The position numbers and the translations under genes are program-made. From Histomonas meleagridis 2922-C6/04-290x (lineage: Eukaryota; Protista; Parabasalia): DNA of 64,000 nucleotides. Below are positions 20,701 through 42,476 of the stretch, piece after piece. The number at the start of each line of letters is the position of its first letter. Position 1 is the stretch's first letter. The notes under the pieces were generated by a model. It had not been told where the DNA came from, ran no database searches, and saw only the letters and a list, made by a program, of their open reading frames with translations. Where the stretch lies: NCBI GenBank assembly GCA_020184695.1, contig JAANOX010000195.1, forward strand, positions 50,862 through 114,861, written 5' to 3'.

Positions 20701-23257
20701 ATAAAACATTTTGATTTAATTGTGTTTCAATATTATCATCAAATAAATCAGGTGAATTCTTTACTAAATATTCAGTAATATCATGTACTAAATTACATGT
20801 TAAAGCAGGATAAAATGTTAATTTATTAATTAATTTTAATAAACATGAAAATAATAATTTATAATCTTCAGTAACAACATTTTCTTTTTTCTTTATCGAA
20901 TTAAATAAACTATCACAATTAATATAATATCCATCGATTTCTATACTTTGATGTTTAAGTTTTGGCTCGCTTAAAACTAATGAATAACATGAAGTAGAAT
21001 CAGGAATTTTATTTAAAAGGACATTTGTATATCTTAAATCTTCTTTATTAAGTTTTAATATTGAAGAAGAAATCTTCGCAATTAATTGGAATTGATTTGT
21101 TCTTTTAATGTTATTAATCCATTGTGGTAAATTAGAAGATTCATGTCTATAAAATGATTGTAATGAAGTTTTCATATGTTCATTAGATTCTAAAGCAGGA
21201 AAAAATAATTGTGTCCATTGATCATAAATTCCAGATTTTTCTTGTTCTTGAATTTTTACAAAAGGAAATATAATAATTGATAATAATGAAGTTAATTCTT
21301 CTAATTTCGGTTCTTCTTGTAATACACGTAAAACAGAATGAAATGAAAATTTTGTTGTTCCTAAATTACTATAAAAATATGATAACTTTTGTGGCTTATT
21401 ATTTTGATGTATTATAAAAAATATATTTAAAACTAACTCAATTAAAACATGATCTTTCGATACCATTGCTTTTAATATAAATCGATATAATGCATTACAT
21501 AATTGATTATTTTGATTAATTTGTAATGATAATTTATTATCAATAAAAGTCTTAATAAAAACTTGTCGTGTAAATAAAAACAAACTCGTATGTGATACTG
21601 GTTGATAAATTTTATCGAATTTTGTTGAAATCGTATTAAAAAATGCCAAATAATATGGAGTAGGATCCTTTAATTCCATTAATAACTTTTGATTTACACT
21701 TATATGATAACTATGATAAGGTTTATCAGGTAATAATAAATATAACTTCTCATATAAAAAAGGTTCTAATATCGCATTAGGTAACGTAGTAATTAACTTA
21801 ACAGAAAATTCAAATAATGATGAAACTTTATCAACGAATTCTTTGGTTGATAAGTTCTTAAATATAATATCAGATAAAATCGGAAATTGTGCTTGTGCTC
21901 TCATTTTTCCAACATTATCTAAAAGAAATGCAATATATTTTGCTACTCTTGATAAAATCGACATTATATAATATTCTGGTTTTGTAGGTACATCCATTGT
22001 TGTAAAAAGCACAAATAATTTCATCAAGCCCATGTTCGCATTTGCCCAAACGTCAAATTCAAATTCTGTTTTAGGATTAGTAAAGTCGACCATTTCATAA
22101 TCTAATTGTATCATTTGGAATGCGCCTGTTACTTGTTCCAAAAGATCACGTTGTAACCCGGGAGTAGCTTTAAATAATGCTGCTGAAACCATTGATTGCA
22201 TTAATACACTTGCCGGTATATTTAAATTTGACATATGAAAATGTCCAATCAATGGCATTATATAAGGTAATAAATATGATAAATTTGTATATGTTTTATT
22301 TTGAATACTTAACCATCCATGTAATGATCGTAAATAAAGAAATACTTTATGACATTTATTTAATGGTGGAAACATAAACGCTTGCATATTCTCCGTGATG
22401 TTTGAGATACAATAATTTGTGATTTCTTGCGTGCGTTGTTGTTCTTTAAAAATTAATAAACAACATAATAATGAAAAATAATTGGAATAAATATAATAAT
22501 TATTCGCGTCATTAGAGATTTGATTCCGAAATTTTAAAACAAGTGATAACGATTTAGAACTTAGAAATTTAACGGATTCTTCAAGTCGTGAGATTAAATG
22601 AAATAATTTACCCGTTAAAAGTTCATGTTGATGTGTGTAAAATGATGAATTACGTGCACGAAGGAGAATATCAGTAAATGATATAAGCGTATCAAGAAGT
22701 GTAGGTAAAACAGATTTGACTTTTTGATCAAATATAAATAATGTAGATCTGCATGTACGTGAAAAGGTTAATAAAAACTTGATGTCACATCCCGGTAAAT
22801 CATCATAATTTTTGGGGATTTTATTGAGAATAATTTTGAAAAAATCTTCTACATTTTCTTGTGTAGAAGACTTAAAGGAGGAATAAAAATCTAATAACGC
22901 AACATATGTAAGAGATAATACAGATCCTTTTGTTTGACGCAGATAAATAAACAATATGGTTTCGATTTGTTGTAATAAATCAAAACTTTTGATTAGTGTA
23001 GGTCTTAAAAAACGAATAAATTGTATGACCTTTTTTTGATATGATTTGTTTTCTTCATTTTCAAGAAAGTTATTTAATAATTGAAGAAAATATTCGATGA
23101 GTAAATTATAATTTGGAATAAGTTCTGAGTCAAGGGAATTTACAAGGTAAGTACTAATTTGATCAAAAAGAGAGGGTGTAAGTGTTATGTTGGATTTTGG
23201 ATTATGTAAAGATTTTAGGAAAATCCCAATTTCATCCATTGAATCTAATCCAACCAT
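14789..23257 (-). CDS. Large PIKK-family HEAT protein, TRRAP/Tra1-like pseudokinase
   Basis: 2822-aa ORF; C-terminal RQSFMSNLGLFSVLRFVF resembles the TRRAP pseudokinase helix; FATC-like end ENSHNELPYAYSWI; no catalytic DRH/DFG seen. Confidence 0.62.
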   Translation of the reverse strand: MVGLDSMDEIGIFLKSLHNPKSNITLTPSLFDQISTYLVNSLDSELIPNYNLLIEYFLQLLNNFLENEENKSYQKKVIQFIRFLRPTLIKSFDLLQQIETILFIYLRQTKGSVLSLTYVALLDFYSSFKSSTQENVEDFFKIILNKIPKNYDDLPGCDIKFLLTFSRTCRSTLFIFDQKVKSVLPTLLDTLISFTDILLRARNSSFYTHQHELLTGKLFHLISRLEESVKFLSSKSLSLVLKFRNQISNDANNYYIYSNYFSLLCCLLIFKEQQRTQEITNYCISNITENMQAFMFPPLNKCHKVFLYLRSLHGWLSIQNKTYTNLSYLLPYIMPLIGHFHMSNLNIPASVLMQSMVSAALFKATPGLQRDLLEQVTGAFQMIQLDYEMVDFTNPKTEFEFDVWANANMGLMKLFVLFTTMDVPTKPEYYIMSILSRVAKYIAFLLDNVGKMRAQAQFPILSDIIFKNLSTKEFVDKVSSLFEFSVKLITTLPNAILEPFLYEKLYLLLPDKPYHSYHISVNQKLLMELKDPTPYYLAFFNTISTKFDKIYQPVSHTSLFLFTRQVFIKTFIDNKLSLQINQNNQLCNALYRFILKAMVSKDHVLIELVLNIFFIIHQNNKPQKLSYFYSNLGTTKFSFHSVLRVLQEEPKLEELTSLLSIIIFPFVKIQEQEKSGIYDQWTQLFFPALESNEHMKTSLQSFYRHESSNLPQWINNIKRTNQFQLIAKISSSILKLNKEDLRYTNVLLNKIPDSTSCYSLVLSEPKLKHQSIEIDGYYINCDSLFNSIKKKENVVTEDYKLLFSCLLKLINKLTFYPALTCNLVHDITEYLVKNSPDLFDDNIETQLNQNVLYIYLVLKHHYLREKSNPINYIDDYVDFLEHCKMICSYRKLISTSVSLINDILPIIPLSSIYSSIIPSLFQASMYDFEHVKDVIQTKIFSKIEHLSKNDEIFREIVSHFHSRVTQFIGKIRKLAIWGLKELHIEYVNQNQFNRFFTEFFKNEQTYKYYHRFQFMLYQDYSNIPNSYEICEKLINTFTNLKIEKIPKEISILFKDITYQEPSLIPINNAKFILKLLARFLIKMPSNNQSTLIWEKLFKTLKSEKFRSFINYFIKVIDKLLDENKIIQSLPNEILNIFGTSNRMPQNPCQCDDIIIFRFLFSHSKVIPTHEIVLWIQAFLCKLSQQNSNFIKSLSTELFLFIKNIHEKDEKINLTSCISASIDLTISPQSSRIPLSLPINIFVDSMPEMVLNIFIIYLKKSNNFEYIILLFNLIFDIKLPKFRDICLNKLYKNLDNFIDFIKKIPKIDLNYLKSRCLSIISNSIDKFKEDDINILLLQNISIELIKKLTQSNDKILTYTPSVLLGFQKIFLPMNFINFYTIDSELLNNLLYNILPLIISCTNIFHHPIFLIYFLGFVKKLEPNVQKIIYNIIPTLQYNNAYEKAFIYHLMIDKFKTFPFETEYQFNVNFDDLNNLTAFQAYFLNTIITSAGFIKNVNIPDFQKCPFIYSCPSSYALSIIYGINDKKFHSFSHMLHVCNILLNTKNEIISSEEFTNLMIHYLTRTQMFYKTVPNKFNKIFQITHFADYNNDQYCNLILTNITFNIFNKINVFERSLYFLTYACKRLHLNKNFSNRLFEVNLQMILTVYERFPDQVFSVGFDHETIEEYVKNVDLEINPIEFDLIARIKNILSNELKENQTKNIQLLKFFYQLISSLARLLIIQNESTPTVLKTLSPKAILASNHFKDLLPFYQKAVQSINLYQEFTIENKIFEELYQLILNKNKNEPISEPFGTPFTTISQWISEITNLQTLFQLKSFLKAFKPMTKTQFRTMIYSLKVPVNNYVLTYIKNLILNEFQFENQDEEMFCRNNLAISNIFITQSNDFINDCWNFNWGQYNEFYHLVIFLRLLLPNNLVEHILTFHETDLIETVSIVISNLNERSKINRFFEYYINVYPNTGLSYCIWQTKSRILGLPLCQNTLIKNMEYLNSRNYIDDSLGLLKTKFKNLYIASSYLQLTHYRAAKSYFLNEMDKDYNTYFYSLIELMKISINLSLPFTTDLYEKFVTRKPNSNNNEFKLPFSLFFQQSSLNIPTILPNQTNNPPDLTTYLSQTYLPYILYIALNDEFNVALQILQQRSLPNSATISTKSKYFWMKALDMQTALSSMLSLRISFCQRIEGSNITNIGNIGGNIPNDPSSTQNIKQQSQEVLINNLNVFIRLLLKSGATHSALKQYRNISQNKPLHVKKHILPSILLFLQNSLVYAQTKWFQNLQSQCNLILGNYQSFPTFYKNGKLSKQWYFVVINLIRKFPQCINIKTIFKTIQGQLILSTDSATLFITLAISIVKQNNAYHKFFETDFLNNFITDPFLPFFLRWLQPIFEICKAIPSEFLFLLYKSHPSLFLITIKHIKNSNLNTEFHQIDEFLLRIKNSKENHTQSDLQKIFNWIDDIEEDIKTLDNNAINHIKFYKSLYKNKYDINNYNELKQKAIFLKDNQPILKTNNTKIQLSYQAGLKFPAINSNIIHAYVQSDGVNETQLKFITVRGELKQIMLVSSRLYQLTYREYLFILGITKYIEKCQSSKLRSHFMFYPMTYLIHPFLSLVHSSSLRTQITMINDNISLLFLKAYKKDIHKDSSPLSTKNKIKIKTDRNYIVNFFLNRCDGSKANFLFMRQSFMSNLGLFSVLRFVFNSSLNVLPNLCFFDDCMKTCVPGFIKSDFNKIPQIPVTKALMKLTPKYILNGTFSTTWNVIPLAFERNIDYIRVLLGSLLNENEIIGKIINRIELMAPIEAEETDKTDDPFPFALLEHIIDCAENSHNELPYAYSWI

Positions 23258-25354: not shown

Positions 25355-25706
25355 TGTGCTTGTTCCTTATCTATAATTCTTGTATTATAATCCAATTAAA
25401 CTTTTTTTTTTTTACACTGGGATATGAAGTCATATTAACTTAGTAAAATCTTATAAATAAATTATTTTAGCAATTCTAAATATATCTTATGCTGATGATG
25501 TATTTACTATAACTTTTAAAATTTTGCGAATAAATATCTTGAAGTGCCAAAAACCAGAAAACATTAATGGTTTTTCTGAAAAAAATATTCAATTTTGTTC
25601 ATTACTATCGGGGCGCTTTCATTTATGTAACTACCATTTCTTTGATACAATTATCAACTCGGTTTCATATTTTTGCTGATTTTGCTTAGAAATGGTTTTA
25701 TTTGTA

Positions 25707-25710
<4 letters not shown>

Positions 25711-25745
<35 letters not shown>
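25711..25745. repeat. (TA)n microsatellite
   Basis: About 17 uninterrupted TA units. Confidence 0.95.
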
Positions 25746-25747
<2 letters not shown>

Positions 25748-26001
25748 ATATAAATTGTTTTATTGTTCTTTTGATTAAAAAATAATTTAATAAAAAAAAA
25801 TCATCTTTCTTTGATGAAAAAAACTTTTCTTTAACAATTAATGTAATACCTCTTATCCACAAAATATTTATAAAGCTTTCATCTGCTTAAGTTGCAGATG
25901 ATGTTTGTTTTGTATTTTGATAGTGATTAATATAAAGACAAAATTTTCTTTGAATTTTCATTTTTTGATACTGCTTAAAAAACCATTTATTAAAATCATA
26001 T

Positions 26002-26508
26002 ATGTTAACAAATTATGTAACTCTAATGCCACGAAGGGCATCAAAAAAGCCGCACCCTCGAGTCCCATTTTCGAAAGATGAGGATGAAAAATTAAAAGAA
26101 CTTGTAAAAATTCATGGGGAAAATTGGAATGAAGTTTCAGAAAAAATGGGAAACCGAAATCCTAGGCAATGCAAAGAAAGATGGACCCATTACTTATCTC
26201 CAGAAATAATCTCAAAACCATGGACTATGGAAGAAGATGATTTCTTGAAAAAGAAGCTGAATGAATTTGGTCCAAAATGGGTAAAAATTTCGAGGTTTTT
26301 TCCAAATAGAACAGATGCTCAACTTAAAAACAGATGGTTTGTATTGATTAGGAAAGAATCTAAAAAAAGAAAAAAAGAAATCAGAAATGAAATTAGTCCA
26401 ATTCATGAAACAAATCAGGGATTTACATTTAATCTAAACTCAAGTGAGTTTCAAATATTTAATGATTTGTTAGATAATATGAAATTGGAACATGATTTCG
26501 AATCTTAA
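26002..26508 (+). CDS. R2R3 Myb DNA-binding protein
   Basis: FSKDEDEKL..NW..RNPRQCKERW and WTMEEDDFL..GPKW..RTDAQLKNRW repeats. Confidence 0.93.
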   Translation: MLTNYVTLMPRRASKKPHPRVPFSKDEDEKLKELVKIHGENWNEVSEKMGNRNPRQCKERWTHYLSPEIISKPWTMEEDDFLKKKLNEFGPKWVKISRFFPNRTDAQLKNRWFVLIRKESKKRKKEIRNEISPIHETNQGFTFNLNSSEFQIFNDLLDNMKLEHDFES

Positions 26509-26609
26509 AGAAGGGTTGATATTATTTTTTAGAATAAAACTTGTAAATTTTTGTTTTTTCGGAGGTTTTGGAGGTTATGACAAAGGGTAATTTTTTACCA
26601 CATTTTCAG

Positions 26610-26855
26610 ATGGATGAAGAACAAAGCAACCAAGAGAACGGAGCTATTATAATCCAAAATTTACAGACTCAAATTGACGACAACAAAAAAAGAATTGAAG
26701 AACTCGAAAGTATTGTTGAATCTCTTGAAACTACAATTCGGAATGCAGAAACCAGTAGCCAAAACTCAAAGCTCAATGCAGTTTTTACATGGATACCTCT
26801 CATTTTCTTAGTTATTGGATATTTATTCAAACGACTGAGTTTAGATCAAGAATGA
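26610..26855 (+). CDS. Small coiled-coil, tail-anchored membrane protein
   Basis: ATG 26610 after Inr-like CACATTTT; heptad region LQTQIDDNKKRIEELESIVESLE; C-terminal TM AVFTWIPLIFLVIGYLF. Confidence 0.62.
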   Translation: MDEEQSNQENGAIIIQNLQTQIDDNKKRIEELESIVESLETTIRNAETSSQNSKLNAVFTWIPLIFLVIGYLFKRLSLDQE

Positions 26856-26897
26856 TTACATATTTTTTTTGTAAGTAACAATAAATAAAACATTCAT

Positions 26898-28175
26898 TTA
26901 TAATTCATGGATTTCAATGTACTTCCTTGAAGCAGCCATGATTGTGTTATGAAGAATTGTTAATCTTTCATTGAGTATTTTTTTGTGATTTTGAACCAAT
27001 GATTCAGTATATGATTCATTTGTTTCTTTAGATCTGACTAACTCATCATTAAGATCAATATAAAGTTTCGCAAGAAGTCCGAGTAAATATCCTGATGAGT
27101 TTGCTATCGCATGATCGAAATCAATTCTCCATACCAAAAAGTGCTTTTTTAGTTTTGTGTGTGGGGCATCCTGAAGTTGATCGTAAAAGAGCACCCCGAG
27201 AAACCGTAACTTTTCAAGGAGTTTTTGGCCGGATGGCAAAAGACACAATTCACAAAGCATTGAAGTTTCAAGGTGTTCTCTTTTAAGAAGTAGGTTTAAC
27301 ACTCTTCTTGCAAGAGGATAACCTATTTCTGATAAAAGTTGTGCAATTTTCTTGATTTTGAAATTTCGAATAGCTAACGCAGGCGTTAAAACCCATTCGT
27401 TTTGTGAGATTATGGAATATTCTTTAGAACGGAGAATTCCATATATTCCGTTGATTTCTTTGGGGGTAATTCCTGTAATTGAAGCAATCATTGGCGTGAC
27501 TTCTTCGACATTGAATTCCGCATTTTCTTTGTTCAAAAGTGTTCCAAAGAAAAGTTCGGGTGAAAACAACGCACGAACAACTTCAATAACTCTGTGGTCA
27601 TTATATTGAACAAGAGATTCAAGTGCAAAAAGTCTTTGCTTCATGAAGAAATAACCAACATTAAATGAGAGACAACCTTGTTCATCAGCAAATAATACAT
27701 TTATTGAAGCAAGATGTTCAATTACAAATAACAGGCGTGAGTTATTGATTTCGGGATTTTTAGTTGCTATGGAGTTGGCTAGTTTTTGTGCAGTGAGTGT
27801 TTGCTCATCAAATACTTTTTTCATCACCAAATTTATAATTTCTTTATCTTGAGGAATTGGCGCAAAACTCAATGCAAACTCGGTAAAATGTGAGTAAAGT
27901 AAGATATTAAATATTTGCTGAAAGTTAATTTGGAATGGTTCTGTTTGGATAATCTTATTGTGGACAAGAAGAGAAATTGCTTCAGAAAATTCTGCTTTTT
28001 TTAAAGTCACAACATCTTTTAATTCTTGAAGGTTTGTTACATTTTTTTCGATTGCAACAGTTAAAAGATAATTACAATTTTGTCCATAAGAATTACCGAC
28101 AATTTTCAAACAGAGGGCTGTTAAAATTTCGTTATGATCACGCCCCCAACAAGCTGCTGCTTCTTCCATTTGCAT
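26898..28175 (-). CDS. RNA polymerase III subunit RPC3/RPC62/RPC82-like
   Basis: Winged-helix-type repeats and C-terminal LARRVLNLLLKREHLET..FLVWRIDF..coiled coil pattern typical of POLR3C. Confidence 0.72.
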   Translation of the reverse strand: MQMEEAAACWGRDHNEILTALCLKIVGNSYGQNCNYLLTVAIEKNVTNLQELKDVVTLKKAEFSEAISLLVHNKIIQTEPFQINFQQIFNILLYSHFTEFALSFAPIPQDKEIINLVMKKVFDEQTLTAQKLANSIATKNPEINNSRLLFVIEHLASINVLFADEQGCLSFNVGYFFMKQRLFALESLVQYNDHRVIEVVRALFSPELFFGTLLNKENAEFNVEEVTPMIASITGITPKEINGIYGILRSKEYSIISQNEWVLTPALAIRNFKIKKIAQLLSEIGYPLARRVLNLLLKREHLETSMLCELCLLPSGQKLLEKLRFLGVLFYDQLQDAPHTKLKKHFLVWRIDFDHAIANSSGYLLGLLAKLYIDLNDELVRSKETNESYTESLVQNHKKILNERLTILHNTIMAASRKYIEIHEL

Positions 28176-28324
28176 TTTTTTCTAATGTGTTTTTGGTATC
28201 TCCACAGTTCGTTTATTATAAGGCGCCCTAAAGTAATTTGTGAAACATATAGAATTTCTGAATACTTTACATATGTGAATTATTTTTTTTCAAAAGCACA
28301 CTTGATCAAGTTGTCAATGTTGAA

Positions 28325-29662
28325 ATGCTAAATACTCTTAAAAACTTGGTTTTTGGTTTAACTGAAGAAAATGTTAATGTAACTGTTCATCAAACAATGG
28401 ATTTGTTTGATTCAAATTTCCCATGTTCGTTTAATTTTCTTTTAAGTATAATAATTTTATCATCATTCTCCACTCGAGTAGATGAAAGTTCTATTTACTT
28501 ACGCTATTTACAAGAAATTCAAAAAAAGCAAGAAATGCTTAAAAATAGTTTTAGAATCATTCATATATTTGGAATTTTCCTATCTGAAATAATGAACCAA
28601 GAAGCACTCTACCTTCTTGATAAAATGTTTGAGCAAAATTTAATTGATATAAAACCCCTCAGAAAAAAATCTTTCTATTTTTCTCATTATCAAGGAATTC
28701 GTATTCTGTTCGATTCTTCAGAGGGTTTCGTCCTGGACTTCTGCAAAGATCGCACCAAACTTTCAAAGAATGATTGGGAACTTCATAAGAAATATGTTAA
28801 AGAAGGAGTTAATCCAAATGAAATTGCGAAAATAATTCGAAATGATGAAATCGAAAAGCTTCAAGAAATCTCATCACACAATAATTTTGATTATAATCAA
28901 ACAATTAAACCATCACTTTATGAAAGATGCTCATTTGTTAATCAGAAAAATGTTACATTAATTGATTATGCAGCATTTTTTTCTTCAGTTAAATGTTTTA
29001 AATATTTACTTATGAATAATGCAAGTGTAGAAAATACAGGCAAATATGCAGTTGCAGGTGGAAATGAAGAAATCATTCATTTATGTGAACAAAATCATTC
29101 ATCATTTGAAGATGCATGTGAAGCTGCAATTAAATATCATCGAAATGATATATTTAAATATATTTATGAAAACAAATTAGAAAAATTGAATAATCATAGT
29201 GAACAAGAAGACCCTTTAACTGGCAATGCAAATCAAGCTCCAAATTCATTTAATAATGGAAATTTAAATCCAGGTTTAAACGGTAATGGAAATCAACACA
29301 TACCATTGTTCAATAGCATAGGATTATTAAATAGATTTAAAGATAATATTTCCTCGAAAATGAATTTAAATTTTTTGGGATATTTTTGTATTAATAATGC
29401 AAATTATGAAATTCTTTCATTTTTGGAAGATAGTGGAATGAAACCTGATGAAAATTTTATTTATAAAATAGCAAGTATTGGCGACTTATATCATGTTAAA
29501 TACTTTCTTAAAAATGTTCAAATTCCGAAAGATATTTTATTATTCTCATCAAAATCAGGAAATATTGAACTTGTAAAATTTTGTCTTGAACAAGAAGGCA
29601 TTGATTTAGATGCAAGATACAAAATTAATGGAAATTGTTTAAATTATTTGATACTCCGTTAA
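28325..29662 (+). CDS. DUF3447-type ankyrin protein 1, N-terminal ORF (coding probably continues through the interrupted array to ~32500)
   Basis: IIRNDEIEKLQ, LIDYAAFFSSVKCFKYLL, AVAGGNEEIIHLCEQ, AIKYHRNDIFKYI; ORF leaves frame in the first spacer (29621-29652). Confidence 0.88.
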   Translation: MLNTLKNLVFGLTEENVNVTVHQTMDLFDSNFPCSFNFLLSIIILSSFSTRVDESSIYLRYLQEIQKKQEMLKNSFRIIHIFGIFLSEIMNQEALYLLDKMFEQNLIDIKPLRKKSFYFSHYQGIRILFDSSEGFVLDFCKDRTKLSKNDWELHKKYVKEGVNPNEIAKIIRNDEIEKLQEISSHNNFDYNQTIKPSLYERCSFVNQKNVTLIDYAAFFSSVKCFKYLLMNNASVENTGKYAVAGGNEEIIHLCEQNHSSFEDACEAAIKYHRNDIFKYIYENKLEKLNNHSEQEDPLTGNANQAPNSFNNGNLNPGLNGNGNQHIPLFNSIGLLNRFKDNISSKMNLNFLGYFCINNANYEILSFLEDSGMKPDENFIYKIASIGDLYHVKYFLKNVQIPKDILLFSSKSGNIELVKFCLEQEGIDLDARYKINGNCLNYLILR

Positions 29663-32425
29663 TATGTGCTACTGAAAGAGGATACACTGAAATCGTTAAA
29701 TTACTTCTTGAACAAGAAGGAATTGATGTTAATGCAAACATTTCTTTGTTTTGTTTAATATTTATTTTAATAATTATGGGATATTTCAAAATAATATTTG
29801 GAAATTATTTAAATTATTTAATACAGCGCTTATTTATGCATCTGATTTTGGTTATATAGAAATCGTTAAATTACTTCTTAAACAAGAAAGAATTGATGTT
29901 AATGCTAAAGATATTTATTTGTTCTATTTAAAATTTATTTTAATAAATTAATATTTCAAAATAATACTTGGAAATTATATAAAATATTTAATACAGCACT
30001 TATTTATGCATCTGAAAATGGTCATATAGAAATAGTTAAATTACTTCTTAAACAAGAAGGAATTGATGTTAATGCTAAAGATATTTATTTGTTTTATTTA
30101 TAATTTATTTAAATATTTTGAAATTTCAAAATAATATTTGGAAATTATTTAAATTATTTTGTAATGCACTTATGACCGCATCAGAAAATGGACATATAGA
30201 AATAGTTAAATTACTTCTTGAACAAGAAGGAATTGATGTTAATGCAAACATTTCTTTGTTTTGTTTAATATTTATTTTAATAATTTTGGGATATTTCAAA
30301 ATAATATTTGGAAATTATTTAAAATATTTAATACATCACTTATATTAGCATCTGAAAATGGACATATAGAAATAGTTAAATTACTTCTTAAACAAGAAAG
30401 AATTGATATTAATGCTAAAAACATTTATTTATTTTACTTAGAATTTATTTTAATAATTTTGGATTTCAAAATAATATTTGGAAATTATTTAAATTATTTG
30501 ATACAGCACTTATATTAGCATCTGCTAATGGTTATACAGAAATAGTACAATTACTTTTTGAACAAGAAGGAATTGATATTAATGCTAAAGATATTTATTT
30601 ATTTTACTTAGAATTTATTTAAATATTTTGAAATTTCAAAATAATATTTGGAAATTATTTAAATTATTTGATACAGCACTTATATTAGCATCTGCAAATG
30701 ATTATACAGAAATAGTTAAATTGCTTCTTAAACAAGAAGGAATTGATGTTAATGCAAACATTTCTTTGTTTTGTTTAATATTTATTTTAATAATTTTGGG
30801 ATATTTTAAAATAATATTTGGAAATTATTTTAAATATTTAATACAGCACTTATGAATGCATCTGAAAATGGTCATATAGAAATAGTACAATTACTTCTTA
30901 AACAAGAAGGAATTGATATTAATGCTAAAGATATTTATTTATTTTACTTAGAATTTATTATAATAATTTGATATTTCAAAATAATATTTGGAAATTATTT
31001 AAATTATTTAATACAGCACTTATATTAGCATCTGAAAATGGTCATATAGAAATAGTTAAATTACTTCTTAAACAAGAAGGAATTGATATTAATGCTAAAG
31101 ATATTTATTTGTTTTATTTATAATTTATTTTAATAATTTGATATTTCAAAATAATATTTGGAAATTATTTAAAATATTTAATACAGCACTTATATTAGCA
31201 TCTGCAAATGATTATACAGAAATAGTTAAATTGCTTCTTAAACAAGAAGGAATTGATGTTAATGCAAACATTTCTTTGTTTTGTTTAATATTTATTTTAA
31301 TAATTTTGGGATATTTTAAAATAATATTTGGAAATTATTTAAATTATTTAATACAGCGCTTATTTATGCATCTAAAAATGTTCATATAGAAATAGTACAA
31401 TTACTTCTTAAACAAGAAGGAATTGATGTTAATGCTAAAGATATTTATTTATTTTACTTAGAATTTATTTTAATAATTTGATATTTCAAAATAATATTTG
31501 GAAATTATTTAAAATATTTAATACAGCACTTATATTAGCATCTGCAAATGATTATACAGAAATAGTTAAATTGCTTCTTGAACAAGAAGGAATTGATATT
31601 AATGCCAAAGATAATATTTATTTTAATAATTTTGGGATATTTTAAAATAATTGGAAATTATTTAAATTATTTAATACAGCACTTATGCTTGCATCAGAAA
31701 ATGGACATATAGAAATAGTTAAATTACTTCTTAAACAAGAAGGAATTGATATTAATGCTAAAGATATTTATTTGTTCTATTTAAAATTTATTTAAATATT
31801 TTGAAATTTCAAAATAATATTCGGAAATTATTGAAATGATTTGATACAGCACTTATTTTAGCATCTGAAAATGGTCATATAGAAATAGTTAAATTACTTC
31901 TTAAACAAGAAGGAATTGATGTTAATGCTAAAGATATTTATTTGTTTTATTTATAATTTATTTAAATATTTTGAAATTTCAAAATAATATTTGGAAATTA
32001 TTTAAATTATTTGATACAGCACTTATTTTAGCATCTGATGAAGGTCATATGGAAATAGTAAACTTACTTCTTAAACAAGAAGGAATTGATATTTTTACTG
32101 AGAATATTTGTTTTTCTAATTTTGGGTTTATTTTCTTGATATGATATACCAAAGTAGTATTTAAAGTTTATTTAAATTATTTCAGCATTCATTTTAGCAT
32201 CTAAAAATAGGCGTATAGAAATAGTTAAATTACTTTTTGAACAAAAAGGAATTGATATTATTACTAAAAATATTTATTTGTTTTAATAATTTGCTGTTTC
32301 AGGGTAATATTTGGAAATTATTAAAAATATTTAACATAGTTCTTACATTAGCAGTTTTTAGTTTTCACAAAGAAGTTGTTAAATTACTTGTTGAAAATAA
32401 AGAAATCAATTTGTTAACAGCATTT
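29621..32425 (+). repeat. Ankyrin tandem array 1: 17 stop-free ~90-nt modules separated by frame-breaking AT-rich spacers, period 170 nt
   Basis: Module starts (Thr position) counted at 29653, 29823, 29993, 30163, 30333, 30503, 30673, 30843, 31013, 31183, 31353, 31523, 31676, 31846, 32016, 32182, 32336; consensus TALIxASENGHIEIVKLLLKQEGIDxNAKD. Confidence 0.95.
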
Positions 32426-32503
32426 CAAATTGCATTGAAAATAGGCATGAAAGATATTATTGATATTTTGAATAATATAGATAGAATTGATAAAAGTAAA
32501 TAA

Positions 32504-32761
32504 ATAAATCAGTTGGAAAAATCACTTGATGGTTTTGAGCAAACAGAAATTAATTTTTCACATCACAAAAGTTATTTTTTGTGTTGTACATGTGGAATAC
32601 TTTCTCCTAATGGTATATGTGAAGGATGTGCAAGAGTTTTTCATTACGGACATGAGTTGGTAGAAGTTAATAGAAAATAAGGATCAGAATTTTTCTGTGA
32701 TGGCACTAGTGTCTGCCTAACTCCATGTAAGCAGATGAAAAATTGTCGTAGAAAACAGTAA
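32504..32761 (+). pseudogene. Degenerate UBR-box-like zinc finger in frame with, and just past, the ankyrin stop
   Basis: Translates FLCCTCGILSPNGICEGCARVFHYGHELVEVNRK*GSEFFCDG; internal TAA at 32678-32680. Confidence 0.62.
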
Positions 32762-33073
32762 AAAAGATGATCTGTTTTTGATAAGTCAAACAATATAATT
32801 GCTATAGATACAACTTTAAATGATTGATTAAAAAAATTGAAAGACATATTATCCATGTTTTTAATTAAATGAATTTTGGACCTATTCAGATGGAATATTC
32901 CATATTTTAATATAAAGACATTATTCAAACCTATTCAGTAAATTTTTGACAAGATGGATTCTTTTGGATTAAGCTTAAATTACAAATTCATTTAAGAAAA
33001 TATTTCCATGAAAACCTGTACATTGCTTTTTTTTTGAACGTTAATTGACACTTTTCCTTCAAATCAGAAAAAA

Positions 33074-33328
33074 ATGAATGAAACCACAGATTCATTGGTT
33101 TCAATTATACATGAGCCTTTAGAACCAACAGAGCAAAGCATTCTAGAATTAGAGTATTTTTATTTTCTAATTTCCAGGCAAGCACAGAATGAATGTTTAG
33201 AATCAATAGAAAATCTTCATCTTACAGAATTTGACGAACTTAGGGAAGCAGTATGTTTTATTTTTAACTCCAGATATCCAAAATTCCAAGTTACATTAAA
33301 AAAATTCATACTATACAAGAAACCATGA
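33074..33328 (+). CDS. Short ORF, possibly a truncated gene fragment
   Basis: ATG after ACACTTTT Inr-like motif; 84 aa; no family recognised. Confidence 0.35.
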   Translation: MNETTDSLVSIIHEPLEPTEQSILELEYFYFLISRQAQNECLESIENLHLTEFDELREAVCFIFNSRYPKFQVTLKKFILYKKP

Positions 33329-33472
33329 ACGAATGTAACACACTTGTTGAAAAAATAAAAAAGCATGTAGCTAAGATTCCTGATGCAAAGTAAAGTATCC
33401 TTGTAATTAAACAAGTTTTTTTAGTTATTTGTTTTATAAACAAACCTAGTCAATTATAATGACACTTTTCCA

Positions 33473-35278
33473 ATGAAGGATTCTTCGATTCTAGATGTTT
33501 GTGGAAAATTTATGTGGGATAAATCAACAGAAACATATCTAAAATCCCACTTAAATTCAAGCACTCATCTTTTGAATCTAGCAACAAATCATATTGGTCC
33601 TGGTAGTGCAGATATTATTACATCAATGATGAAGTACGAATCCAGTAATCTTGAAGAACTCGTTTTTGATCAATGCCGTCTTACAGTCGAATCTTCAATG
33701 AAAATATTCGATGCGCTTCCTCAATCCAAAGTTACATATCTTTCAATGAACCAAAATGTGCTTACTCTTGAAGCATGTCAAAAATTTGCAGAAATACTGA
33801 ATCAAGATCCTGTCCTTCAATTTGTAAGTTTTGCTGGATGTGATATTCCTGCTGATGGTTGTGTAGCCATTGCTAAATCACTTCCCAATACAACTCATCT
33901 CGAAATTCTTATACTTGATTCCAACTGTATATTTGACAAAGGAGTCATTAAAATTGCCAAATATCTATCACGTTCATCACTTAAAGAGTTATCAATTAGT
34001 GATAATCATGTTTGGAAAGAAGGCACCAATTCTTTACTCAAAGCCATTATTGATTCACCTAATGTTGTTTCATTAGATATTTCCTATAACATTGTTGATT
34101 TAGCATATTTAGCAGAATGTCTTTCATCCTCATCAATTCGCAATCTTTCAATTACCGGGTGTAAAGTCAGCAAATCACAAATATTCCTATTCCTTGAAAG
34201 TCTAGGTCGTTCTAACCTTCATACATTAATTGTTGAAGGAATGAACCTTGAGTCACAACTTCCCATCTCATGGCCGCACGTTAAGGACACGTTATGGGCC
34301 GATGGCCCACTTTTTATGAAGTTTACATCGATGATTAATTCGAGTAAAACCCTTGATGATGTTAGACTTGGTTTTATCGATTTAAATTGTATTAGCATTT
34401 TTAAGAAAGCCATTTCCAAAGAAGTGATTATCTCTATGAATGATTTTGGGCGAACTGAAAATACGTGGGTCATACATTTACCCGAATTTAATGTCGAATC
34501 ACCACTTCCTATTTTACAATGGAATTCGCCCATTCGAAAAGATGAATCTATTGTGTTACTTGATATTTTTAAAAACACAACATTCCAAGGAGAACCATTA
34601 GATTCATTAAGTGTTACTAATTCTGATTTAAATGATCAAACACTTCAAGAACTATTCAGTAATTTCCATGGAATTAATCTTCGGGTTTTAGATATGTCCA
34701 ATAATTCTTTTAGTGATAATTCTGTTGAATCCATTCTTAAGTATTTAAATGAAACAAACATTGAACATTTAATACTTAATAAAACAAATATCACAGAAGT
34801 TGGTTACAAAATACTTTTTTCGAATTTGGAAAAGATTCCTTATACAATTGTATTCTCATTTGAAACACTAAATAATGATGAAGCTTTTACACATGAATTC
34901 TTTAATGACTTAGCAAATTTGATCGAAAATGATCCGCAACTTGAAGAAATGACAATAAATGGATTTGTCACATCAAGCGATTTATTATTAATATTTGCAA
35001 AAATGAAAAAGAATTCGCATCTAAAAAAGTTAATTATCGAAACAGAAATCCCAGATGAGTATAAAGTACCAAACCCTCAGATATTACCTGAGGTACAGGA
35101 AGGTTATAATGCTATGGTGGATGCTTTATATCATGCGCTGTGTGATGAGGATTCGATGTGCGTGTTAAACACTTTTAAGTTCCAAATGTTGACTTCAGTT
35201 TACTTGTTTAGTGATGCGATTTTGAACCTTTGGGGAGAAATTGAAACTAAATTGGAAAGTAATAATGAATTGGAATAA
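33473..35278 (+). CDS. RNI-like leucine-rich repeat protein
   Basis: Repeated LxxLxLxxNxI units (LNLATNHIG, LILDSNCIFDKG, LSISDNHVWKEG, LDISYN, LDMSNN). Confidence 0.85.
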   Translation: MKDSSILDVCGKFMWDKSTETYLKSHLNSSTHLLNLATNHIGPGSADIITSMMKYESSNLEELVFDQCRLTVESSMKIFDALPQSKVTYLSMNQNVLTLEACQKFAEILNQDPVLQFVSFAGCDIPADGCVAIAKSLPNTTHLEILILDSNCIFDKGVIKIAKYLSRSSLKELSISDNHVWKEGTNSLLKAIIDSPNVVSLDISYNIVDLAYLAECLSSSSIRNLSITGCKVSKSQIFLFLESLGRSNLHTLIVEGMNLESQLPISWPHVKDTLWADGPLFMKFTSMINSSKTLDDVRLGFIDLNCISIFKKAISKEVIISMNDFGRTENTWVIHLPEFNVESPLPILQWNSPIRKDESIVLLDIFKNTTFQGEPLDSLSVTNSDLNDQTLQELFSNFHGINLRVLDMSNNSFSDNSVESILKYLNETNIEHLILNKTNITEVGYKILFSNLEKIPYTIVFSFETLNNDEAFTHEFFNDLANLIENDPQLEEMTINGFVTSSDLLLIFAKMKKNSHLKKLIIETEIPDEYKVPNPQILPEVQEGYNAMVDALYHALCDEDSMCVLNTFKFQMLTSVYLFSDAILNLWGEIETKLESNNELE

Positions 35279-35509
35279 ATATAAACAAAATTATTTTATT
35301 TGATAAATAAATGATATAAATAATATTTTTTTTTTAAATAAACAAAATGAATTTTTTTTTTCATTTATAAAGTAAAAAGTGACTGTTAAAGATAAACTTC
35401 AACGAAAAACAAAAACATTTCTCAAATAAATTTCCAAAAAATTAATAAACAGATTAAAAACGTCCTCGATGAAATTAGTGAACAAAGTAATGAAGGCGAA
35501 AGCAACTTA

Positions 35510-36850
35510 ATGGAACCAAAATTTCATCTTCATTATCTCCAACTTCGTGATTTAGGAATTGCACTTGATACACTACTCGATAAAGAACCTCCAAGTGATG
35601 ATAATCCTAAAGTTGTTGGGGGACAAGCATTAATCACAAAAATTACAACCAAATATTTAGAAAAAAGATTTAACATTTTCAAAACATATAATCAACCAAA
35701 AATTGACCAACTTTACTTTGGGCAAATATGTCTATTGAAAGAGCCAGATTCAAAGATATCATTAGTCGTTATTACAAATCAAGTCAAAAAAGACGTATAC
35801 AAAGTCTACCACCTTAATTCTCGCCTCAGTTTTTCATATGGATGCCCACATGATCTTCTACTATTTGAACATTTTGATCATTCCGAAGTTTCCATTGGTA
35901 CTAAGGCCTATGGAATCGTTTTTCATAGCTCCAGAAACAACTACGAGATCATCAGTGGCACTATTACCTTGATTTCTGATGATGGAATATTTTCTATTCA
36001 AACGGACACCTCATTAATTCCCATTGAAAAAAGGTTTATAGCACTCACTGAGTCACCGTTTCCTTTTGATCAACAGAACGAAGACGAAAAGAACAATGTT
36101 TGCAATGAAAAAGAAGTAAAAGCAAATCGAAAAAGTAAAAAAGCGAATCGCTTCAAAGGCAAACGAAAGCACGAAATGCAAAACGTAAACCAAGAAGCAG
36201 AAGAAGCCAATGAAAATACAGAGCAAACTTCTCCGACAGATAATATTTCCGATCAAAATGAAAATAATCTTCAGCAACAACAACAACAACAAAATGAATT
36301 TTTTAATATTCCACAAGTTTCCATATTACAAAATGAACAAACACAGAATGAAACAGACTTTGAAGAAACAAGTTTAAATCAAAGTTCATTTTTTAAATGG
36401 GAAACACAAAATAAGGAAAACATCACAAACGAAAATAACCAAATTAAATACATGACGCAAAAGATACAAACTATATCCAGTGAAGAAGAAGAAAATATTA
36501 AAAGTTCTCCTGTGAAATATATGTCACAGAAAGTACAAGTTGATCCGAATGAAGAAATCGTGCAAAAGTTAACAACAAAGAATAACAACGATTCGGGCAT
36601 GATGAAAGGATCGCAAACACTTTCTATTATGAAAGGTAATGAAAATAAAGATGAAGAATTATCTGTGGAAAGTAAAGAAAATAAGAACGATTCATTAGCG
36701 AATAAACAAATGCAACAGATGCCAAATACATTAAGCATGACAAAAGAAAAAGAACTGATAAATGAATATCTGTCGACAATAATGAAAAGTATCTTAAAAG
36801 AAAAAGGAAATAACCAATCAACAGATGATAATTTGTCACCAGATAATTAA
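35510..36850 (+). CDS. Hypothetical protein with low-complexity E/N/Q-rich C-terminal half
   Basis: 446-aa ATG-initiated ORF; beta-rich N-terminus; poly-Q stretch. Confidence 0.65.
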   Translation: MEPKFHLHYLQLRDLGIALDTLLDKEPPSDDNPKVVGGQALITKITTKYLEKRFNIFKTYNQPKIDQLYFGQICLLKEPDSKISLVVITNQVKKDVYKVYHLNSRLSFSYGCPHDLLLFEHFDHSEVSIGTKAYGIVFHSSRNNYEIISGTITLISDDGIFSIQTDTSLIPIEKRFIALTESPFPFDQQNEDEKNNVCNEKEVKANRKSKKANRFKGKRKHEMQNVNQEAEEANENTEQTSPTDNISDQNENNLQQQQQQQNEFFNIPQVSILQNEQTQNETDFEETSLNQSSFFKWETQNKENITNENNQIKYMTQKIQTISSEEEENIKSSPVKYMSQKVQVDPNEEIVQKLTTKNNNDSGMMKGSQTLSIMKGNENKDEELSVESKENKNDSLANKQMQQMPNTLSMTKEKELINEYLSTIMKSILKEKGNNQSTDDNLSPDN

Positions 36851-36984
36851 TAAATTTGTACTTCATTTAAATTTTTGGATAATTTATAAATTTGTTACCA
36901 AAATGAATTTTTGTGTTTTTTAATTGTTGTGTAATTATTTTGAATACTTTACAATTTAACGTATTTTCTTGATCAGTTCACTTT

Positions 36985-38289
36985 ATGCTGAATGAAAACC
37001 CTTTCTTAAGACAAACCGTAAATAAGAATCAAAATAATGAATCCCCATGGGAATCTGTACGAATCCGTAAAAAGAAATATAATCCTCCACCAAATCAAAG
37101 CAATATCAACCCAAATATTAATATTAATCCACCACAAGAAAAATCATTCCAACAAGTAACGCCCCATGTTGCTATAGGCGCTGGTCCAATATTAGGTGAT
37201 GCTAATGAATTTTTGGAATTGATAAAAGATGTTTTAAAGAAAAATTCTATTCAATTTCCAAATCAAATAGACTTATATCCAGGAGGATTTTGGATTATGC
37301 TTATGGATGATTTTGAGTCCAGAAAAAAGCTACTTCAAATGAATGGAACAAATAATATAATTTTTTCAGGAATTGATCTTAGATTTGGTGCACAAATTGC
37401 AGACACTCTTTTGCCAATTCTTCCAATGAGGATTCATGACAATATTCTAGATCTTTCTGATTTTCCCTATTCTTTCAATTTTGATCTTTTCAATAATTTT
37501 TCATTTATTATGTTTTTTTCAGCTATATACTGCATACGAAACAAAAACAAAATCGAAAAGATATATTTTATTAATGAATTAATGACCAAACCAAATATTC
37601 ACGATTTTCGATATCTCAGATATTATTTTCCTTTTCTTCAAACTCTTGTTCTTCCTCTTGATGTAGATGTTACTGGTTTCAAACACATTCTTGATGTTCA
37701 AAATGTACAACTTATTCTTAGTAACGAAGTTTGTATACCTCCAAAAATAGTACAACCACAAAAAACATCATCATATCCATTTATTCCATTAACGAATCCC
37801 CAATCGTTAAATCTTAACAAGCTTTCTCTTAACGATTTCCCTGTAAAACCGTTTGACACTTTTGTTTATCCTCGTGCTGATTACGTTGGTAAATTTTTTG
37901 AATGTTTATGGACTGATATAAATTTGATAAAACCATTTTATAAGAATGCTTCTGTGTTTTCTGTTTCTGTGGCTTCACATGGTCCGTTTTCTCCACTTGA
38001 TTATTTTGATGGTTTTGCTCGGAATATGAAATGTTCAAATATAAAAGAAAATGTTCTTATTGGTGCTGATATGATAACTGGGGGACAAATGAAAATGTTT
38101 AATGGGCATTTCTTTGCACATCCAAGTTCTTATAATGGACAAAAATTCTCAGATAATTTGGAAACTGTAGTTGTTCACGGAGTGTTTGGATTTGAAGAAA
38201 ATGTATTTGGATTCGATAGAGTGCTTGTGTTGGCCAACACGGGTGAATTATATATATCAAATGATCATATTTTCATTAGAAATATCTAA
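36985..38289 (+). CDS. NXF1/Mex67-like mRNA export factor (LRR-like plus NTF2-like domain)
   Basis: C-terminal VVVHGVFGFEE..FGFDRVLVL..LYISNDHIFIRN resembles the NXF NTF2-like domain; Inr TCACTTT just before ATG. Confidence 0.68.
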   Translation: MLNENPFLRQTVNKNQNNESPWESVRIRKKKYNPPPNQSNINPNININPPQEKSFQQVTPHVAIGAGPILGDANEFLELIKDVLKKNSIQFPNQIDLYPGGFWIMLMDDFESRKKLLQMNGTNNIIFSGIDLRFGAQIADTLLPILPMRIHDNILDLSDFPYSFNFDLFNNFSFIMFFSAIYCIRNKNKIEKIYFINELMTKPNIHDFRYLRYYFPFLQTLVLPLDVDVTGFKHILDVQNVQLILSNEVCIPPKIVQPQKTSSYPFIPLTNPQSLNLNKLSLNDFPVKPFDTFVYPRADYVGKFFECLWTDINLIKPFYKNASVFSVSVASHGPFSPLDYFDGFARNMKCSNIKENVLIGADMITGGQMKMFNGHFFAHPSSYNGQKFSDNLETVVVHGVFGFEENVFGFDRVLVLANTGELYISNDHIFIRNI

Positions 38290-38559
38290 AATGTATATAT
38301 TTTTCATGAATGAATTTAAATTTTTATATTTATGTTTCACTGTTTATTCGATTAATCGAATTATTAATGTTTAGCATGAAAATCATTGAGCTTTATCATA
38401 ATTGTAATTATTGGTGAGGAAGAAATCAAAACCTTTGAATATTCCAATATTTTGTGTATATTCATGTTCTTGTAATTTCATGAAATCAAAAACATGTTAG
38501 CAATGATAAATGAAAAATATTATAAAAAAACATAAAAATAAATTTATTGAACAAAAAAA

Positions 38560-38904
38560 TTAGTTAAAACGTGTACGAAATGCCCAGACTGAAGCTATGC
38601 ATTGCATAGATTCATTGGCCCATTTAGTAGTAATTTTTGTGTCATTTTGAGAATCCCAAAATGCCATTTGACTTTCATGAATATGTTGACTAAAAGGACT
38701 TAGTATCATGCATTTAGCTATGAATTTATATTGAGGAGTATATTTATTTTTGAGCTTTTTAAGAATTTCTTTTACAATTGATGTACACCAACTTTCAACA
38801 CTACTTTTCTCAAATTCTTTCCCATTTAGATTTTTGTGTATTGATGATTGGGCAACGACTTGCATTGTTTTCATTATTTCAGGGGAATCTGGTTCGCTCG
38901 CCAT
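38560..38904 (-). CDS. Tctex-1 family dynein light chain
   Basis: SWCTSIVKEILKKLK, YKFIAKCMI, FWDSQND, WANESMQCIASVWA. Confidence 0.9.
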   Translation of the reverse strand: MASEPDSPEIMKTMQVVAQSSIHKNLNGKEFEKSSVESWCTSIVKEILKKLKNKYTPQYKFIAKCMILSPFSQHIHESQMAFWDSQNDTKITTKWANESMQCIASVWAFRTRFN

Positions 38905-38989
38905 CCACCCAATTAATAGGGTGCACCGTCAATAACGGTCTCTTTGATAACGGTCGCTTCTTTTTGGGTCTACCCCAAATTTTTTTTAA

Positions 38990-40090
38990 ATGTATGACAT
39001 GGACGAATTCGTCACAAAAATCATAGATATTGGAACATGTTTTTATAGAGGTGGATTTTCAGGTGATGACAGTATGTGTCTTAGTGATTATACAATGATT
39101 TTTTATCCAAATGATACCAAAAAACAAAATTCATATTATGTTGGTTGTTTCAATGGTGAAGTAAGTAAAGTTAAAAAACCAATTGAGCGAGGTGCCATCA
39201 AGAACTGGGATGATATGGAAATAATATTGGATGAAATTTTTAAACAATTTGAACGATACCATATATCCTCAAGGTCAGTACTCCATGTTGATAGCCTCCT
39301 CGACCCGACTATTAACAGAGGTAAAATGTCTGAGATCATGTTTGAAAAGTATAATTTTAGATATTTTTACTCAGGAAATCAATGCACTTTTGACACATAT
39401 AGTGCAGGCTTGTTTACCACCCTTATCATTAACATAGGCCATGGCACTACACAAATTGTTCCAGTGTATGAATTATCAGCAATTACATCTGCAGCATCCG
39501 AACTCAACATTTCTGGTGTTGATATCACACAAATGTTTGAGAATCTTCTTTATGAACGAGGTTATACATTTAATGATCCAACTGACATTGAATACCTTAA
39601 ACGAAAATCATCATATGTTGCAGATGACTTTGAGTCCGAACTTATTAAAGCTAAAACGACGAATGAATGTAATCAAACAATTTCTGTTGACTCTCAAGAA
39701 ATAACTCTTTCATATGAACGATTTGTTTGTTATGAGCAATTATTCCGAAATCAATCGAATGGGTTTAATCAAAAAGGAATTGTTGAAGCTGCATACGATT
39801 CAATTATGAGCTTAGATGAAGAATTAAGGAAAAAAATAAAATGCATTTACTTGATGGGTGGTTCTACACTTGTGGATGGGCTCATTGATAGATTTGATAA
39901 AGAACTAACAAAGAAAATGGAAAACAAAAATATAAAATTTAAGATTCTTGCAACTGTAGAAAGACCTAAGAATAGTTGGGTAGGAGCATCTATTTTTTCA
40001 AGTTTGAGCTGGTATGATCAAGCCTATGTTAAAAAAGATGAGTATGATGAATATGGATTATCTTTTGTATTAAAAAAATGTTTTAATTAA
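38990..40090 (+). CDS. Divergent actin-like protein
   Basis: IIDIGT..GGFSGD, KPIERGAIKNWDDME, NIGHGTTQIVPV, LMGGSTL, WVGASI, EYDEYG..KKCF. Confidence 0.9.
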   Translation: MYDMDEFVTKIIDIGTCFYRGGFSGDDSMCLSDYTMIFYPNDTKKQNSYYVGCFNGEVSKVKKPIERGAIKNWDDMEIILDEIFKQFERYHISSRSVLHVDSLLDPTINRGKMSEIMFEKYNFRYFYSGNQCTFDTYSAGLFTTLIINIGHGTTQIVPVYELSAITSAASELNISGVDITQMFENLLYERGYTFNDPTDIEYLKRKSSYVADDFESELIKAKTTNECNQTISVDSQEITLSYERFVCYEQLFRNQSNGFNQKGIVEAAYDSIMSLDEELRKKIKCIYLMGGSTLVDGLIDRFDKELTKKMENKNIKFKILATVERPKNSWVGASIFSSLSWYDQAYVKKDEYDEYGLSFVLKKCFN

Positions 40091-40179
40091 TTTTTTGATT
40101 TTTTTAAACAGATAAAATTCAATATGTAATTGTTGAAACATAATATTAAAAGAAGTAAATTTATGTTTTTTACAGATGT

Positions 40180-40725: not shown

Positions 40726-40787
40726 AAATAACGTTTATTTTAACGGTCGATAATATAATAATAAACGTTCTCTAAAGACATTTTAAA

Positions 40788-42269: not shown

Positions 42270-42476
42270 AAAATTATTCGATGTTTTTGTAAAATGTATT
42301 CATTTATGAATTTTTCCAAGCATTTTATTGTTAAAAATAATAAATTTATTGAGATATCAATAAAATAAAAATAAAATTATAAAGTTAAACCACTATTTGA
42401 ATTTTTATTAATAACAGCACTTTGATTTTTCTATTTCTTATTTTTGTTTGAAATAAGCAGGCAAATATATCTTGTA

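Follow-up and report, generated by a model that had tools for sequence, protein, structure and literature searches.

The 64,000-nucleotide (nt) stretch of Histomonas meleagridis contig JAANOX010000195.1 analysed here (the window) carries two genes of the same build, in which an N-terminal coding part is followed by an array of single ankyrin repeats, separated from one another by A/T-rich spacers that are mostly exactly 80 nt long. Gene 1 lies on the plus strand (28325–32503) and gene 2 on the minus strand (60720 to 57521), 25 kb from gene 1. One of the ORFs of the window is encoded identically on this contig (assembly GCA_020184695.1), and over 17.8 kb (window 25473–43278) the two sequences agree at every base. 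The repeat modules are under selection as coding sequence; the spacers do not code for protein. We give about an even chance to the reading that the spacer is a non-canonical intron-like element which is removed from RNA and which was duplicated together with a one-repeat exon; this element may be a strongly diverged relative of the introns of trichomonads. The published genome of the organism has 28.7% GC and few introns, and was annotated ab initio with AUGUSTUS (PMC8529796).

Coding modules and non-coding spacers

The N-terminal coding part of gene 1 (28325–29620) is uninterrupted, encodes a DUF3447 domain and short ankyrin-like repeats, and ends in ...IDLDARY. The open reading frame (ORF) to which it belongs extends from 28325 to 29662 (445 residues), running into the repeat region, and matches Pfam DUF3447 (E=3.8e-9) and Ank_2. 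For this ORF AlphaFold2 predicts confident helix pairs with a period of 28–31 residues between residues 345 and 422 (predicted local distance difference test score of about 80), and gives low confidence over the tail translated from the spacer. The first spacer, from whose first nucleotide (29621) the first-pass annotation of this DNA had let the interrupted region run, is a short form of 32 nt (29621–29652) that retains only the conserved 3′ core of the 80-nt element (29628–29651 align with positions 56–79 of a spacer sequence model; E=0.003). It is followed by 16 units, each made of a module of 87–90 nt and a spacer (29653–32335), with modules starting at 29653, 29823, 29993, 30163, 30333, 30503, 30673, 30843, 31013, 31183, 31353, 31523, 31676, 31846, 32016 and 32185. 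A terminal ankyrin-like module with a C-terminal tail (32336–32503) ends at a TAA codon; its ORF spans 32237–32503 and matches Ank_2 weakly. Recounting from the module starts gave 17 modules (first start 29653, last 32336) and intervals of 170 nt in 13 of 16 cases, the others being 153, 169 and 151 nt. This bears out the 17 stop-free modules and the 170-nt spacing reported in the first-pass annotation, as does Tandem Repeats Finder (period 170, 15.4 copies, 29689–32285).

With its flanks, a module matches the Pfam ankyrin profiles (PF00023 / PF12796) with E=1.6e-9 over profile positions 3–32 of 33. The ankyrin repeat is a helix-turn-helix unit of about 33 residues, with the signature T-x-L, G-H, V-x-L-L-L and D-x-N. 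This signature is kept by all of the modules of the window (17 in gene 1 and 12 in gene 2) and by 22 modules from gut-metagenome relatives, which are described below. There is no stop codon among the 17 modules of gene 1, and those of the relatives have no stop in 629 codons, compared with 41 and 83 in the other two frames. In these metagenome modules the differences at the three codon positions are 0.38, 0.23 and 0.48, and the ratio of nonsynonymous to synonymous differences (pN/pS) is 0.52–0.56. None of 108 distinct variant events among the window modules creates a stop codon (P=0.0005 if neutral), and the synonymous share of these events is 0.30, against 0.18 expected. The lack of selection for an open frame that would mark a dead satellite or a pseudogene was found neither in the window modules nor in the metagenome modules, and we conclude that the modules are selected as coding sequence.

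With the final codon of one module and the Thr codon of the following one as its limits, the spacer of array 1 is 80 nt long at 13 of 16 junctions and 63, 79 and 61 nt long at the other three. Its GC content is 0.10, compared with 0.27 for the modules. Reading through 80 nt moves the frame by 2, and 17 of the 29 window spacers have a stop when entered in the frame of the module before them, so that the description of these segments as A/T-rich, frame-breaking and about 80 nt long holds. When every possible retained flank was tried, the flank that is free of stops in all 31 distinct spacers was at most 4 nt on the 5′ side, 8 nt on the 3′ side and 9 nt for both sides together. Even in the conserved 3′ half of the spacers, variants that create a stop make up 5 of 28 events, against an expected share of 0.13, that is, they arise at or above the neutral rate. 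The spacers are therefore not coding, and 71–80 nt per unit cannot be translated; the 68–71 nt proposed earlier as the skipped length has to be corrected to this range, as skipping 68 nt leaves a stop in three of the 31 distinct spacers. Since the spacers are untranslatable and the modules downstream of them were selected throughout spacer divergence, something must remove or skip the spacers, as the first-pass annotation had concluded.

Gene 2 repeats this organization on the minus strand. Its N-terminal coding part (59551–60720, DUF3447 and ankyrin; ORF 59461–60720; Pfam DUF3447, E=2.1e-9) is a paralogue of that of gene 1, with 52% identity. The array that follows (57581–59550) contains 11 modules and 12 spacers, of which eleven are 80 nt long; the remaining one (100 nt, between the modules at 59300 and 59110) consists of two partial copies of the element. 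A truncated terminal module (57521–57580) ends in ...TEIIEMLT, followed by TGA, and the array of metagenome contig L012 likewise finishes in a truncated module and a stop codon. All 30 copies found by the spacer sequence model in the window lie in arrays 1 and 2, and nothing significant was found in the window outside them. For a 22-mer from the spacer core, 36 occurrences were counted, where chance would give 0.05.

A candidate intron-like element and its relatives

Searching with the N-terminal domain returned about a dozen gut-metagenome proteins that are 40–50% identical to it, all of which end in ...IDINAKDI or similar, at the same break as gene 1. Their contigs carry one spacer each (L001, L003 and L012), three spacers of 80 nt and one of 66 nt (L013), or six spacers of exactly 80 nt (L006, the modules of which are 40–50% identical to one another as proteins). 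L010 has an in-frame variant of 63 nt, a length that is also found in one unit of the window. In L013, an in-frame switch from half an ankyrin module to a GC-richer match to GDP-mannose 4,6-dehydratase (about 745–929; Pfam E=3.6e-17) most likely marks a chimeric metagenome scaffold. More distant members occur in Tritrichomonas foetus and Tritrichomonas musculus, in which, at the protein level only, the sequence ends in or contains a spacer-like hydrophobic stretch directly after an ankyrin repeat. The Histomonas paralogues P0012, P0026, P0028 and P0031 (caskin-like proteins in the naming of their source) read into the first spacer and stop there, and the family appears to be systematically truncated in annotation. 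At the paralogue locus L002, which we considered as a carrier of an array, there is none, and a putative transposon interrupts it: an ORF that looks by eye like a mariner-type transposase (about 7400–8400) stands after P0012, where the array would be expected.

Larger searches gave the same picture. With an N-terminal profile run against 1.84 billion protein representatives, the close relatives all stop at the first spacer; an 84-residue unit ORF used as a protein query matched only short unspliced ORFs; and two modules of P0006 with an intact junction found only P0006 itself among 5.8 billion proteins, and no uninterrupted array. Protein matches with many repeats (P0037, P0045, P0060 and others), considered as possible spliced arrays, turned out to be generic ankyrin proteins. 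A scan of Joint Genome Institute metagenomes for the 22-mer core returned only two unrelated chance matches (L008 and L009). We found no description of such elements in the literature on Histomonas, Dientamoeba and parabasalids generally, nor in that on Tritrichomonas splice sites, on Histomonas ankyrin genes or in the one known intron-structure paper.

The two halves of the spacer are conserved to different degrees. Among the window copies, diversity per 10-nt segment is 0.07–0.16 in the 3′ half and 0.27–0.40 in the 5′ half; in a representative copy (31103–31182), positions 41–80 (31143–31182) form the conserved 3′ core. Six T columns (T3, T22, T37, T44, T56 and T76) do not vary at all, and 17 of 21 divergent copies retain G58 and G59. 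At the 5′ end the hexamer RTTTAY (longer consensus RTTTATTTG) comes right after the module. Its first base is G in the GC-richer contigs L006, L010 and L013, and A in L001, L003, L012 and Histomonas, where nearly all copies have ATTTAT. Among the copies with G, the forms GTTTAC, GTTTTA, GTTTAT and GTTCAT are seen, and two copies start with GC. Of 10 spacers with G as the first base, 5 also have G as the last, compared with 1 of the 32 other spacers; although these copies are not independent of one another, the pairing hints at the relation between the first and last bases of spliceosomal introns. When 23 divergent 80-nt spacers were aligned with gaps allowed, the only indel was a 3-nt insertion in one window subtype; the mean pairwise identity of the metagenome spacers is 0.51–0.62 in every 10-nt segment. 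Within array 1 (29653–32335), three spacer subtypes are mixed in an order roughly three units long: one with G at position 9, one with A at position 9 and CTTAG, and one that follows a 29-residue module ending in NAN and has the 3-nt insertion.

According to the reading that we prefer, the arrays would have grown by tandem duplication of an exon (one repeat, 90 nt) together with a spacer (80 nt), which would place one spacer per ankyrin repeat at the same point, after the closing Asp/Asn codon of one repeat and before the Thr codon of the following one. The element would be recognized by the 5′ hexamer directly after the module, by the roughly 36-nt block that is conserved at the 3′ end (core TTTGGAAWTT followed by TTYAAATTATTT) and by its fixed overall length, with no 3′ AG. 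Once 71–80 nt are removed, the protein would be continuous, with repeats of 30–33 residues up to a truncated capping repeat, after which comes a stop codon. Repeats of this length are structurally plausible, because the uninterrupted repeats of the gene 1 protein already have a period of 28–31 residues. We infer from the sequence that removal takes place at the RNA level, that the spliceosome is its agent and where the cut sites lie. Besides the 5′ ends that start with G, the intron-like traits that we count for this reading are the conservation of the 3′ half, the short first junction of gene 1, which keeps that part alone, the confinement of the element to the two arrays of the window, and a junction in L003. 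The latter is the only uninterrupted junction in the family; it is 12 nt long, starts with GT, ends with AG and reads V-M-F-E, and its sequence resembles a spacer reduced to its first codon and its last two.

Canonical splicing is excluded. Among the border pairs that are compatible with the frame, there is no GT-AG, no AT-AC and none ending in AG. An exhaustive donor and acceptor search over 16 junctions left eight without an in-frame, stop-free GT/GC-AG solution, and the rest share none, in agreement with the earlier statement that no GT-AG pair restores the frame. Two of the L006 spacers contain no AG at all, and the window contains neither of the AG-ending 3′ motifs of Trichomonas (RCTAACACAYAG or TCTAACH(1-2)AACAG). 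The ACAG at the module start was considered as a Trichomonas-like 3′ site and rejected: its AG is absent in the relatives, the resulting lengths are out of frame, and the Thr codon varies synonymously (ACA, ACC, ACT, ACG, TCG), so that it is not a splice site. An AT-AC intron from the AT of GAT to the CAC of GCA-CTT is in frame at nine junctions, but would remove the conserved T-x-L, and it fails at five of the six L006 junctions; AT-AC joins of any kind are possible at only 12 of 17 junctions and at varying offsets, which does not correspond to U12-type termini. A tiny intron of 17–23 nt at the 5′ end of the spacer was also discarded, as splicing to an AG at positions 18–21 would leave the frame wrong, and several copies have no such AG.

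We then compared the spacers with known introns. Those of Trichomonas vaginalis and Trichomonas stableri, spliceosomal introns from the same phylum (Parabasalia), fall into type A (56–196 nt) and type B (23–28 nt), with the 5′ motifs GYAYGY or, for type B, GTWYWD (PMC12316389). The GTTTAY of the GC-richer relatives fits GTWYWD wholly or nearly; long and short size classes share one conserved 3′ block in both systems, the 3′ signal stands at a fixed distance from the exon, and ankyrin genes are among the intron bearers. Unlike these introns, the spacers have no terminal AG and no ACTAAC branch motif, start with A in Histomonas, have a 3′ block of about 36 nt rather than 12 nt, and are fixed at 80 nt. 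U12-type introns tolerate varied 3′ dinucleotides and keep a strict spacing between the branch and the 3′ site (PMC6679479), which is a likeness to the spacers. Further likenesses are the A or G at +1 in homologous copies and a T-rich, branch-like TTSTTYAAAT at spacer positions 62–71, 9–11 nt from the module, although it agrees with the U12 branch site TTCCTTRAY at only six of nine positions and lacks the CC, a weak match in sequence with 90% A+T. The 5′ site of the spacers, RTTTATTTG, differs from the U12-type RTATCCTT. We know of no report of a minor spliceosome in parabasalids. Euglenid non-conventional introns share with the spacers the absence of GT-AG borders, the location in nuclear protein genes and the presence of several copies per gene, but their ends pair in a stable stem, whereas the spacers have no conserved or stable fold. 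The layout itself has a parallel in animal ankyrin genes, which can have one exon per repeat, for example the 99-nt exons of erythrocyte ankyrin. There too, one intervening sequence per repeat stands at the same position and in the same phase owing to tandem duplication of exon plus intron; the animal introns, however, are canonical and variable in length, whereas the spacers are non-canonical, fixed in length and mutually related in sequence.

Weighing removal from RNA against its alternatives

The first-pass annotation had offered non-canonical splicing, ribosomal hopping and DNA excision as ways of skipping the spacers. Of these, removal from RNA would be the best fit, while the other two are disfavoured by the evidence set out below. 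Nevertheless, a number of observations weigh against removal from RNA. No gene is called for gene 1 and its array in the GenBank record (28325–32503; L005 2698–8000), and the protein searches returned no transcript- or cDNA-derived protein and no spliced gene model of the family. At the spacers themselves, nearly all window copies have A and not G as first base, and neither an AG end nor a CTAAC-type branch motif was found. In trichomonads, one or two introns per gene have been described to date, compared with 12–17 spacers per gene here. The exact length of 80 nt holds in copies that are only about 57% identical, whereas ordinary introns of this size do not keep their length in this way, and no RNA fold accounts for it: RNAalifold found no consensus structure, single-sequence folds are no stabler than shuffles (mean z-score +0.2), and Rfam gave no family match at gathering score, with one sub-threshold chance match in 29500–32600. 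Selection on the window modules is weaker than in the relatives (pN/pS 0.64–0.88). Finally, the 3′ end of gene 1 is decayed, as had been suspected. The last two units have spacers of 79 and 61 nt, and downstream of the tail, in its frame, lies the remnant of a UBR box (32504–32761) with two in-frame TAA codons, a damaged CDCG motif and a Pfam zf-UBR score of 21.2 bits, under the cut-off of 25.2. A distant family member, P0092, has an intact zf-UBR, and the ancestral gene may therefore have had a UBR box.

The missing annotation, the higher pN/pS and the decay also suit the view that the Histomonas arrays died or fell silent recently, that unequal crossing-over keeps their units alike, and that the protein made from the gene stops in the first spacer, after ...IDLDARY and a short tail. 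The annotated paralogues P0026, P0028 and P0031, which all end in spacer read-through, are consistent with such a product. Tandem Repeats Finder, moreover, prefers a higher-order period of 340 nt (85% matches) over that of 170 nt (80%) in array 1, which points to recent amplification of the array. Tandem satellites of 170–171 bp offer a parallel in unit length, in tandem layout and in the 340-nt period, but here half of each unit is selected coding sequence and the array is attached to an intact ORF. The absence of stop-creating events among the 108 in the window modules and the enrichment of synonymous changes also oppose dead arrays, as does the fact that both arrays finish in proper terminal modules with stop codons. 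Above all, dead arrays cannot explain the relatives, in which the module frames stayed open as the spacers fell to about 57% identity; the interrupted state has therefore long been compatible with translation. A recent loss of expression would be compatible with the decayed UBR box and last units and with the weaker selection in the window. We regard the death of the arrays as unlikely on balance, and it ranks second after removal at the RNA level.

The spacers might instead be dealt with by the ribosome, through a −1 (or +2) frameshift at each module end or through hopping over the spacer. The frame of the next module is indeed open through 18 of the 29 window spacers and three of the six L006 spacers, but it is closed by stops in the other 11 window spacers, including the first of gene 2, in L003, L012 and L013, and in three L006 spacers. 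The sole indel among the aligned spacers is of 3 nt, and in-frame variants of 63 and 66 nt exist, some of them open (L010 unit b, L013 and P0025); yet stop-creating variants are not depleted in the spacers. Some window copies have TTA then TAA at the 5′ end and TTA at the 3′ end, which we count for recoding; against it, none of the six L006 spacers ends in the same codon as the module before it. The stretch of about 14 nt in which stops permit a shift contains no slippery heptamer (X XXY YYZ), and there is neither a stable downstream structure nor a take-off hairpin. Known bypass elements (phage T4 gene 60 and the byp elements of Magnusiomyces mitochondria) resemble the spacers as short non-coding inserts in an ORF, many per gene in the yeast, and the insert often begins with a stop codon; the spacers differ in having no matched take-off and landing codons and no hairpin, in the gap of 80 nt, and in belonging to a nuclear gene that is translated in the cytosol. 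P0019 (L010 86–496) was examined as possible proof of read-through and set aside, as the gene call does not yield P0019 under the standard code. Two of the three L010 spacers have in-frame TGA and TAA codons, with TGA where P0019 has Trp, so that its apparent read-through needs TGA to be read as Trp; the metagenome pipeline probably applied a TGA=Trp code to this eukaryotic contig, and P0025, with its open-looking spacer, may be affected by the same problem. As 12–17 successive events would moreover leave almost no full-length product, we consider recoding very improbable.

Processing at the DNA level, in which the spacers would be cut from the DNA of some nuclei, like the internal eliminated sequences of ciliates, or in which the modules would be silent cassettes that are copied into an expression site, is to us the least probable of the explanations. 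A strict length without RNA structure would suit a DNA-cutting enzyme with phasing requirements, and the putative mariner-type element that interrupts a paralogue could be taken in the same sense. The consensus spacer of the window has T|A at both borders; this is a feature of the window consensus only, in contrast to the TA found at both borders of ciliate eliminated sequences, and L006 and the other relatives have no conserved border repeats. The spacers are present in the Histomonas assembly, built from long and short reads, and in all six short-read metagenome contigs that bear junctions; no uninterrupted array was found among the 5.8 billion proteins searched; and each array is directly joined to its own intact N-terminal ORF. 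We are not aware of any report of programmed DNA elimination in parabasalids, although no search aimed at it was made.

Removal from RNA need not imply a degenerate spliceosomal intron. The spacers could be intervening sequences of a class of their own, confined to Tritrichomonadida (Histomonas, the metagenome relatives and possibly Tritrichomonas), whose machinery would read the 36-nt 3′ block and measure length, and would depend neither on GT-AG borders nor on an RNA fold. We hold this to be improbable, but the exact length without any fold fits none of the models considered and is the strongest reason for keeping a separate mechanism in play.

Other features of the window and wider meaning

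Elsewhere in the window, the public model of an actin-family gene (38990–40090; L005 13518–14618) has 348 residues, compared with an uninterrupted ORF of 366 codons, and AUGUSTUS seems to have placed an intron inside this continuous ORF. This apparent intron call suggests that the published intron count for the Histomonas genome is unreliable. An uninterrupted ORF of 2822 codons occupies 14789–23257 on the minus strand, in a region of 20–23% GC. The only RNA gene found by Rfam and ARAGORN in the window is a tRNA-Lys (CTT) at 55046–55119.

Parabasalids are regarded as nearly intron-free, with canonical and stereotyped introns, and gene finders and RNA-seq pipelines drop junctions without the motifs of such introns. 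If arrays with 12–17 non-canonical, length-fixed intervening sequences do exist, a class of genes would be mis-annotated as truncated proteins in Histomonas, and perhaps also in Tritrichomonas, where members of the family end in similar-looking tails. Either the parabasalid spliceosome would then take substrates without an AG, or another removal system would exist in these organisms. The arrays would also provide a clean natural system in which to study the recognition of an intervening sequence that conserves its length and an internal block and not its borders.

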